From Ministeria vibrans ATCC 50519 (taxonomy: Eukaryota; Protista; Filasterea), in NCBI GenBank assembly GCA_943704425.1, contig CALSCP010002596.1:1-41297 (forward strand): DNA of 41,297 bases. Direction: 5' to 3'. The translations under genes were made by a program, and so were the position numbers. Below the pieces are notes generated by a model. That model did not search any database and was not told the origin of the DNA. It saw only the letters and a program-made list of their open reading frames with translations. Below, piece by piece: positions 32,503 to 34,118 of the stretch. The stretch's first letter is position 1. Each line of letters opens with the position of its first letter.

Positions 32503-33064
32503 CTCTACCCTAGGCCTGAGTCCAGAGGTGTGATGGGTCGTGAATCGGCCGTTAATATTACCACTAATACATCATTCTCAACTTTTCTCCCCCTCCTCTG
32601 AAAACCTGAGCGACTCAGATTTTATGTATTATTTGTATTATTGTATTATTAGTTATATAATTGGGGGGGTGTGTGCGCTGTTTTTTTTTTTTTTTTCGTG
32701 ATTTGTGGTCTGCCAAAGCGCTGCCAGTCCCTGTAAATCAGGGCGTGTTATATCCGCATACGCGTTAGTCGGTGTATGTCTGATATGTCGGTGAAGGATG
32801 TACGGTGGCGGAGGGCGGTGATTTCAAGTGAGAGCCGTTCTCGCTTAATTTATCCTTTTTTGATTCCCTCCAAAAAGATTCGCCTTGCTCGTTAGCACCT
32901 GCATCTAGGGCGTGTCTGAATGCAACATTCCCAATCCTATTTGTGTTAATAGAAGAAAGAGAAGAGAACATCTACGAGGAATATTAACTTCATCATTCTT
33001 TGCAACAGATATGCCGAATGCCGCACTCGCTATTATGATGCTCGCCCTGGCAGTAGCTGTCTTT

Positions 33065-33815
33065 GAAAAGAGTGAGAAAGAAAGAATGTGGAATTGACTG
33101 ACTGTGGATGTGATTGTTTTGTCTGTTTCTGTTGTTCATTGCAGCGTGTAAGTTCAGAAAAGAGTGAGAAAGAAAGAATGTGGAATTGACTGACTGTGGA
33201 TGTGATTGTTTTGTCTGTTTCTGTTGTTCATTGCAGTGGGTAAGTTCAGAAAAGAGTGAGAAATAAAGAATGTGGAATTGACTGACTGTGGATGTGATTG
33301 TTTTGTCTGTTTCTGTTGTTCATTGCAGCGCGTAAGTTCAGAAAAGAGTGAGAAAGAAAGAATGTGGAATTGACTGACTGTGGATGTGATTGTTTTGTCT
33401 GTTTCTGTTGTTCATTGCAGTGGGTAAGTTCAGAAAAGAGTGAGAAATAAAGAATGTGGAATTGACTGACTGTGGATGTGATTGTTTTGTCTGTTTCTGT
33501 TGTTCATTGCAGCGCGTAAGTTCAGAAAAGAGTGAGAAAGAAAGAATGTGGAATTGACTGACTGTGGATGTGATTGTTTTGTCTGTTTCTGTTGTTCATT
33601 GCAGCNNNNNNNGCGTAAGTTCAGAAAAGAGTGAGAAAGAAAGAATGTGGAATTGACTGACTGTGGATGTGATTGTTTTGTCTGTTTCTGTTGTTCATTG
33701 CAGGGAGTAAGTTCAGAAAAGAGTGAGAAAGAAAGAATGTGGAATTGACTGACTGTGGATGTGATTGTTTTGTCTGTTTCTGTTGTTCATTGCAGGGGGT
33801 AAGTTCAGAAAAGAC
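33065..33815 (+). repeat. 92-bp tandem array: 89-nt intron-like unit plus variable 3-nt spacer (8 junctions visible, one spanning the assembly gap 33606-33612)
   Basis: Unit GTAAGTtcagaaaagagtgagaaagaaagaatgtggaattgactgactgtggatgtgattgttttgtctgtttctgttgttcattgCAG; spacers CGT, TGG, CGC, TGG, CGC, C[N]GC, GGA, GGG. Confidence 0.95.
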
Positions 33816-34118
33816 CGGAGAGATGAACTGTTGTTTGTCAACTGCAACATAACCTTTTTGTTGTTTTTAGAATAAGGAACCAGCCGCCGCAACTCAAACA
33901 GGCAGGGAGCAGAGGCTCGACTCGACGGTCGACTCAATAGAAAAGAAAAATAAGCGAGATCCGACACCGACAACAAAACGCTGTCGTCCATCGCCACACC
34001 AGCTTCACCACTGCACCATACATACACCGAAAGACGACGCCCAGGGATTTGCTAGTGAAAAATCATTTTGAACGACAGTCGGCAGCGAAAACTTGAGTCC
34101 GCGTGATGAGATGGCGGC

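Follow-up and report, generated by a model that had tools for sequence, protein, structure and literature searches.

A subtelomeric tandem array of intron-like units with variable 3-nt spacers in Ministeria vibrans, and related arrays in leucine-rich repeat genes of the same genome

We analysed a stretch of 41,297 nucleotides from the filasterean protist Ministeria vibrans ATCC 50519 (contig CALSCP010002596.1 of assembly GCA_943704425.1, positions 1 to 41,297 of the forward strand; called the window in the following), which carries a tandem array with a period of 92 bp. Each unit of this array consists of 89 constant nucleotides that look like a complete intron, and of 3 nucleotides that differ from unit to unit. 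The array is genuine and the differences between its triplets are not assembly errors. Sequence comparison places it, as a diverged orphan, in a family of arrays in which introns appear to alternate with 3-nt exons, and which in this genome are found in genes with leucine-rich repeats (LRR). We tentatively propose, with a probability of about 0.4, that the array in the window forms the intron-rich 5' leader of a transcript carrying the open reading frame (ORF) at 34111-34506, that this leader is spliced stepwise up to 33870/33871 with the triplets remaining as leader sequence, and that the left edge of the array is also where an abundant antisense RNA begins.

For independent evidence, contigs of four public runs were aligned to positions 32500-35000 of the window: X3, a DNA run of 2022 from another study, the RNA-like runs X7 and X11, and also X13. 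These contigs carry no strand information, and rare forms are dropped from them. The parts of the array are as follows.

33065-33814, plus strand: tandem array with a period of 92 bp, 8.1 assembled copies with 95% matches (Tandem Repeats Finder)
33053-33144, plus strand: first intron-like unit, a hybrid whose 12 unique nucleotides (GTAGCTGTCTTT) form a weak donor and are followed by the repeat, from GAAAAGAG to TTGCAG
33145-33147, plus strand: 3-nt spacer CGT, exact in RNA contig X11#5 (33065-33186)
33237-33239, plus strand: 3-nt spacer TGG, followed by a unit with G>T at 33264
33329-33331, plus strand: 3-nt spacer CGC, exact in DNA contig X3#12 (33300-33361), whose depth of 958 corresponds to about 5.5 copies of the junction
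33421-33423, plus strand: 3-nt spacer TGG, followed by a unit with G>T at 33448
33513-33515, plus strand: 3-nt spacer CGC, forming with TGG 33421-33423 a duplicated 184-bp dimer
33605-33614, plus strand: C-N7-GC, an assembly gap within collapsed units, probably of the CGC type, with a deficit in copy number
33704-33706, plus strand: 3-nt spacer GGA, exact in X3#13 and X7#23
33796-33798, plus strand: 3-nt spacer GGG, exact in X3#15 (33768-34429)
33799-33870, plus strand: last intron-like stretch of 72 nt, made of 16 nt of the unit and then unique sequence, with a T-rich tract and TTTTTAG at 33870

The constant 89 nt of the unit comprise a GTAAGT donor, the branch-like motif TTGACTGAC, a T-rich tract and CAG. 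Seven such units are complete (starts at 33148, 33240, 33332, 33424, 33516, 33615 and 33707); each runs from GTAAGT to TTGCAG, and in every one of them the signals of a U2-type GT-AG intron on the plus strand (GTAAGT, branch-like motif, pyrimidine- or T-rich tract, YAG) are complete. An earlier note, which had been made from the letters alone and which we call the original prediction, had described the array, its spacers, the G>T changes, the last donor and the flanks; all of these are present in the sequence, and the intact GT-AG signals agree with its description of the units as intron-like. The repeat proper begins with the letters GAAAAGAG (33065) and ends with GAAAAGA (33814), so that one unit comprises the 3' part of one intron-like stretch, the triplet and the 5' part of the next. 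GAAAAGA is common to both borders of the array.

Outside the spacers, the units vary by a single G>T (33264 and 33448), in both cases in the unit that follows TGG, which points to the duplication of the 184-bp TGG-CGC dimer. At least five of a minimum of six substitutions fall within 3 of the 92 positions of the unit, for which we calculated a probability of about 2e-7 under an even spread. These figures bear out the earlier claim that the variation is concentrated in the 3-nt spacer.

One could suspect an artefact of assembly or sequencing, given the 7-N gap and the approximately six copies that are collapsed in the assembly. However, the CGC, GGA and GGG junctions are reproduced without mismatch in the DNA run X3, the CGT junction in X11 and the GGA junction in X7, and the same architecture is found at at least 13 loci; we regard the artefact as extremely improbable. 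The concern, voiced in the original prediction itself, that the 3-nt differences might be assembly errors is answered by these exact junctions in independent runs.

In the DNA contigs of X3, the unit core has a depth of 2443, compared with about 175 in the flanks. This ratio gives about 14 copies and an array of about 1.3 kb, which, set against the 8.1 assembled copies, means that about six units are concealed by the 7-N gap, where the true copy number had been suspected to be hidden. By the same measure, the GGA junction is present in about 2.8 copies. The window ends with 19.7 copies of GGGTTA (41180-41297), a telomeric repeat, and the array is thus subtelomeric, lying 7.4 kb away from it.

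We then asked whether such arrays occur elsewhere in the genome. A pattern of three YAG-NNN-GTAAG sites spaced 45-75 nt apart has 115 matches in the genome, and 38 matches are obtained when the gaps are set to 75-105 nt; in both cases the control gives none. A looser pattern with short gaps returned low-complexity noise only. In summary, at least 13 loci carry a tandem intron-like unit plus 3 nt, with about 200 units in all. The arrays lie on contigs C43 (L051 4998-8443), C73 (L052), C915 (L053 1683-4900), C2647 (L055 5506-7300), C1600 (L054), C1237 (L015), C1260 (L057), C1049 (L058), C312 (L059), C1977 (L056), C2017 (L060), C2736 (L061) and others. Their introns are 77-90 nt long, up to about 43 units are assembled per array, and many of the arrays contain assembly gaps or contig ends.

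The spacer is exactly 3 nt long in all 186 of the 186 resolvable junctions, while the length of the introns varies through indels. In the four arrays for which we calculated it, the entropy of the triplets is 1.0-1.9 bits, compared with a mean of 0.06-0.10 in the introns. The related units occur solely as head-to-tail arrays, at one position and in one class of genes. The intron units of C43 and C915 are 95.3% alike in pairwise comparison and their consensus sequences agree in 76 of 77 positions, which exceeds the likeness of the flanks of the two arrays (87.4% upstream, 93.8% downstream). An alignment of the unit consensus sequences of 11 arrays retains GTAAG, TGACTGA and YAG. A metagenome scan with the core of the family unit gave no match, and in a full-text search of the literature we were not able to find any description of such arrays.

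The unit in the window can be aligned with all unit types of the family. It is 74.6% identical over 114 nt to the units of C2017 (blastn, E 6e-14); in a global alignment with the C2017 unit 68 of 93 positions match (z 7.5). At this divergence of about 26%, the 5' splice site (6 nt) and a 12-nt branch-like block do not show a single difference, for which the calculated chance is about 0.004. Such unchanged splice-signal blocks suggest a long history under splicing constraint. The flanks of the window array are unrelated to those of the array genes, and only the repeat itself is homologous: upstream of 33053 there is no LRR match or motif (the sole LRR match in the window is at 7601-7944), and the open stretch behind it (33871-34071) bears no relation to the exon found after the arrays of C915, C73 and C2017, a phase-1 exon of the type W-K/T-x-D/H-T...

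Three other identities that were considered for the array did not hold. Tandem insertions of Introner-like elements, an alternative in the original prediction, are ruled out: in the 29.7-Mb genome the 92-bp unit matches only its own locus (C2596:33065-33814), there are no single dispersed copies, and its relatives are found in arrays only. The second alternative, a ladder of recursive splicing, would call for ratchet sites (AG/GT, with an exon of zero length); here, 3 nt always lie between the 3' and the 5' site, and only 2 of 174 triplets start with GT. Finally, we rejected a small RNA encoded in the intron, such as that of a small nucleolar RNA host gene or a mirtron. The search of the unit against Rfam gave a chance match only (E 0.36), and the unit folds no better than shuffled sequences (z +0.9 on the plus and +1.95 on the minus strand; +0.13 for the 77-nt family unit).

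What genes do the related arrays belong to? In C43, C915, C2647, C1237, C1260 and C1049, a conserved LRR exon (...LQELLLTxNPL...LPDWIG...) lies 0.4-0.7 kb upstream of the array, and the array of C2017 is likewise preceded by an LRR exon. Wherever the flanks are assembled, the arrays stand behind LRR exons and in front of kinase, ankyrin-RING or P-loop exons. The array of C915 is followed by a coiled-coil exon and then a protein kinase, and that of C2017 by ankyrin repeats and a RING finger. The array of C73 is followed by an exon of 63 nt, an exon of 4 nt (ATCC) and an ORF of 300 codons with GAVMAGKT; Pfam finds no family in this P-loop-like exon, and the P-loop assignment is made from the motif and the 300-codon ORF only. 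A phmmer search with the exon after the C915 array returned coiled-coil noise only, and the 578-aa kinase exon found nothing, in both cases in protein libraries that apparently lack this organism.

The 4-nt exon of C73 (L052 reverse complement 2808-2811) stands between a T-rich tract with TAG and GTAAGA, and it is needed to keep the frame between the 63-nt exon and the 300-codon ORF, which suggests that this genome uses very short exons. In the family, the last codon of the LRR exon is cut after its first base, and two bases have to be supplied to the exon behind the array. A phase-0 reading of C73 puts a stop into the exon after the array, and 1 + 63 + 4 nucleotides reach the frame of the long ORF. 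Only with array introns in phase 1 do these frames fit, so that each codon would be composed of the last base of one triplet and the first two bases of the next. The fit does not prove that the triplets are included, since removal of the whole array as a single intron would also keep the frame. Of the micro-exon architecture that had originally been proposed, one part stands, as exact 3-nt spacers recur in LRR genes whose flanking exons can be joined in frame only through a frame-preserving array; the other part, the gene for a secreted peptide, is not supported.

The window itself contains a paralogue of these LRR genes:

8165-8375, plus strand: LRR-gene paralogue with predicted 3-nt exons TCT (8165-8167), TTT (8219-8221) and GGC (8296-8298), then one 77-nt family unit (8299-8375)

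The first two triplets of the array genes, this paralogue included, sit between different introns that are not repeated, which argues that the architecture is not merely that of a satellite. After 8375 the sequence of the paralogue changes, and a tyrosine-kinase-like exon begins near 8690. Furthermore, window positions 3-545 and the terminal kinase exon of C915 (L053 7268-7813) share 99.4% identity at the protein level, probably as a result of an overlap between these contigs or of a recent duplication.

Next, we looked at the RNA around the window array. To its left, the following parts of an antisense RNA can be seen.

32972-33026, minus strand: intron of 55 nt (GTGCGG...CGTAG), joint 32971->33027, CT..AC on the plus strand, depth 143 in X11 and 491 in X7
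33027-33094, minus strand: first assembled exon of the abundant antisense RNA (contigs X11#3 and X7#22), which enters the left edge of the array by at least 30 nt
32610-32971, minus strand: second exon of the antisense RNA, whose first AUG opens an ORF of 68 codons (32971-32768)

The piece 32972-33026 is skipped in X11 and X7, has CT..AC ends on the plus strand and is retained in the DNA run X3, and it is hence an intron of a minus-strand RNA. This RNA has a depth of 143 in X11 and 491 in X7, compared with 9.5 and 37.5 to the right of the array. Its contigs X11#3 and X7#22 cross 33052/33053, the proposed first donor, unspliced and continue for 30 nt into the repeat. The 68-aa ORF shows no coding signal (codon log-likelihood ratio, LLR, -0.08), and neither its protein nor that of a 92-aa ORF on the minus strand is on record. 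In the DNA there is a run of 16 T at 32681-32696; in X11, about half of the depth continues after it with at least 11 extra T instead of CGTGATT, for which slippage and the poly(A) head of a minus-strand RNA are two possibilities.

At the right end of the array, no contig of X7 or X11 covers 33815-33869, where the last intron-like stretch is unique sequence. A 4799-nt RNA contig of X7 stops at 33870, exactly at the last predicted acceptor, and carries 2 further letters that are not genomic. This end fits a junction GGG/AATAAGG with differing upstream partners, given that the G at 33870 matches by coincidence. Contigs of X11 and X13 cover about 33937-34725, leaving the coding sequence of the neighbouring GBP gene uncovered, and so the region after the array belongs to a separate small transcript and not to the 3' untranslated region (UTR) of GBP. 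Three elements of the plus strand matter here.

33011-33052, plus strand: exon 1 of the original prediction (MPNAALAIMMLALA), unsupported, with its ATG in the antisense intron and its remainder in the antisense exon
33871-34071, plus strand: 'tail' of 66 open codons and TGA (34069-34071), UTR-like, covered by RNA contigs independently of the GBP gene
34111-34506, plus strand: orphan ORF of 131 aa with the motif C-x5-H...C-x4-C, in the frame of the tail

The tail has no homologue in a search of 5.8 billion proteins, no Pfam or PHROGs family and no paralogue in its own genome, and a metagenome scan with its start gave no match. There is no ATG over 235 nt (33871-34105), the GC content at third codon positions (GC3) is 0.47, compared with 0.65 in the long ORFs of the genome, and the codon LLR is about 0. 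The ORF behind it scores as coding (34111-34503; codon LLR +0.10, GC3 0.70). The exact product of this ORF has been called on a public contig of 1638 nt (33960-35597), which ends short of the array; the ORF has no family in Pfam and no match in PDB. The missing ATG, the UTR-like composition and the coding-like ORF downstream indicate that the tail is probably the 5' leader of ORF 34111.

A few observations concern the same ORF. A single in-frame TGA (34069-34071), confirmed in several runs, parts the 66-codon tail from the ORF 34072-34506. Within ORF 34111, the 64 bp at 34380-34443 match C2647:80685-80768 in the opposite orientation with 89% identity. The array of C2647 is about 0.8 kb away from that match, and DNA contigs of X3 branch at both ends of the 64-bp segment.

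The original prediction had seen in the array a secreted-peptide gene, in which splicing in phase 0 would join a signal exon (33011-33052), single-codon exons for R, W, R, W, R...G, G and a tail of 66 aa, with combinatorial skipping. Indeed, this is the only self-contained ORF starting with ATG, and all the triplets are sense codons. ATG 33011 encodes MPNAALAIMMLALA, which is hydrophobic and has A-L-A at its end, followed by GTAGCT, and one RNA contig ends at the last acceptor. However, the dominant antisense RNA has an intron exactly where this ATG is located, and the donor at 33052/33053 is read through. The supposed coding tail has the UTR-like composition and the lack of relatives described above, and 40 nt past the stop of the proposed ORF, the transcript has a better one. 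Moreover, the homologous arrays use phase 1, which in the window would give GAA TAA right after the array (33798/33871-75). Measured against schistosome-type micro-exon genes, the locus has a signal exon that the RNA contradicts, no variant transcripts among the RNA contigs and no homologues. We consider the secreted-peptide gene improbable.

According to the reading that we prefer, the array sits between the abundant antisense spliced RNA and a weakly expressed sense transcript carrying ORF 34111-34506. Splicing would run stepwise from 5' to 3', with a new GTAAGT brought 3 nt behind the previous junction at each step, until the acceptor 33870/33871 is reached. In that case the triplets would belong to the leader and could at most form part of an upstream ORF; they would not give a secreted peptide. 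The length of the array changes by in-register unequal exchange, as the 184-bp TGG-CGC dimer and the overlap of GAAAAGA at both borders show. In the LRR genes, a hypervariable linker between the LRR and the effector exons would be encoded by the arrays, one 3-nt exon at a time.

Several observations weigh against this reading. GTAGCT is a weak candidate for the first donor, and RNA contigs continue across it. A contig of 122 nt (92 + 30), which is a closed cycle of the unit with the spacer included, is present in both X7 and X11. Relative to the antisense flank its depth is 0.5-0.7, relative to the tail 7-9; whichever strand it stems from, many unspliced units are thus kept in RNA. Among the contigs of the RNA-like runs, there is no spliced sense contig and no spliced junction inside the array. 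The boundary at 33870 could alternatively be a transcription start with a few added G. Of the predicted splicing, what the RNA contigs support is the last acceptor, at which the X7 contig ends exactly. ORF 34111 matches only itself in the protein search and has no homologues. For the family, splicing is a prediction from the sequence, and the stop counts in the triplets (0 compared with 3.1 expected in phase 0, 1 compared with 3.05 in phase 1) do not settle whether they are translated.

Some of these points would agree with the array being intergenic promoter or spacer DNA between two divergent genes, with the antisense RNA starting at its left edge, the transcript of ORF 34111 starting at 33871, and the intron-like signals being inherited and unused. 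RNA cover does depart from the array in both directions, and most transcripts do not cross the whole array, since the cycle contig would then have 14 times the depth of a flank and in fact falls far short of this on either side. On the other hand, the boundary lies exactly behind a T-rich tract with TAG and shows 2 non-genomic letters, as an acceptor predicts, the base before 33871 is a G, which is not initiator-like, and divergent starts give no reason for the variation of the triplets. We think that this arrangement is unlikely.

There is maybe no sense splicing at all. A piece of an LRR-gene array may have been copied to the subtelomere and may now be a dead relic, a plain minisatellite that appears in RNA only through the 5' end of the antisense RNA or its read-through and through background. 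Neither flank being homologous to the array genes, the missing LRR exon upstream, the unspliced units in the RNA contigs, the start of the antisense RNA within the array and the location 7.4 kb from the telomere are what one would expect of such a relic. It is harder to see why the splice signals should be intact in a unit that is about 26% diverged from its nearest relatives, why the triplets should still be hypervariable and exactly 3 nt long, and why there should be a strong acceptor in the unique right flank with the boundary of an RNA contig exactly at it. We hold the relic to be possible, if doubtful. Variable triplets beside introns that are alike are accounted for by none of the models, the spliced leader that we prefer included.

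How does the array compare with known systems? Micro-exon genes (MEGs) of schistosomes have symmetric exons of 6-36 nt with unrelated introns, and encode secreted proteins of the parasite. As in MEGs, there are runs of very short exons here, multiples of 3 in length, whose skipping keeps the frame, and protein variation by splicing is proposed. Unlike in MEGs, the putative exons are 3 nt long, up to 40 or more stand in a row, and the introns are tandem copies that are 95-99% alike; the host genes encode protist LRR proteins that look cytosolic, the two systems are not homologous in sequence, and no transcripts were seen.

Recursive splicing shares with our proposal the stepwise removal, a 3' splice site immediately before a 5' splice site and a new GTAAGT at the end of the exon. 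However, a ratchet AG/GT leaves nothing behind, whereas here 3 nt would remain in the mRNA, and the sites are copies of one unit instead of being independent. Introner-like elements likewise place many near-identical introns in one genome, but they are single, dispersed and in unrelated genes, while the window unit is found at one locus and its relatives only in head-to-tail arrays. The Rogers model explains the gain of introns or exons by tandem duplication across splice signals. In agreement with it, the unit begins within one intron, contains a micro-exon and ends within the following intron, and GAAAAGA stands at both borders, as expected if the duplicated segment ran from intron to intron. 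The known cases of that model are single duplications, in contrast to the 8-40 or more units of these arrays, in which the introns are homogenised and the triplets diversified.

Exons as short as the triplets can be spliced. An exon of 1 bp has been verified by RNA-seq in Zygnema (PMC11096116), and exons of 3 nt are cited for Drosophila, mouse, chicken and Amphidinium (PMC12584245); the C73 gene, as described above, needs an exon of 4 nt. The known micro-exons of 1-3 nt are isolated between ordinary introns, however, and do not form arrays. Finally, an ordinary minisatellite (variable number tandem repeat) also has head-to-tail copies, higher-order dimers, a collapsed copy number and a subtelomeric location. 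Unlike in a minisatellite, only three positions of the unit vary, with splice signals on either side of them, and this is true of the window array as well as of about 200 units at other loci. In summary, tandem runs of 3-nt exons with homogenised introns are found in none of the systems that we compared. A different tandem repeat of the window (14971-16059; 8.2 copies of 132 bp, 95% matches, no indels) has a period of 44 codons, which suggests a coding repeat.

It is possible, if doubtful, that linkers of LRR proteins (LRR-kinase, LRR-ankyrin-RING and LRR-P-loop) are built from up to 40 or more consecutive 3-nt exons, with near-identical introns and diversifying triplets, that they give rise to peptide diversity by splicing, and that the window array is a displaced copy. 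The window copy is the least informative member of the family with respect to function, but it is useful as a copy outside a coding frame. If it is such a displaced copy, the variability of the triplets persists outside a coding context, and if it is truly non-coding, something else than selection on the protein would have to make the triplets vary. In practical terms, each of these arrays interrupted the assembly or was collapsed in it, and a standard gene finder would mis-annotate them.

Should the triplets indeed be included in mRNA, we know of no micro-exon architecture as extreme as this one, with dozens of single-triplet exons in succession. The usual pattern would be inverted, with conserved introns (95-99% between paralogous arrays) and hypervariable exons. 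As phase 1 splits the codons, skipping any subset of the triplets would keep the frame and make new codons at the junctions. The arrays would bear on the minimal exon that the spliceosome can define between short introns, on the multiplication of introns and exons by tandem duplication, and on the diversification of unicellular LRR proteins by splicing, for which they would, if the triplets are indeed included, constitute a splicing-based generator of peptide diversity in a unicellular organism.

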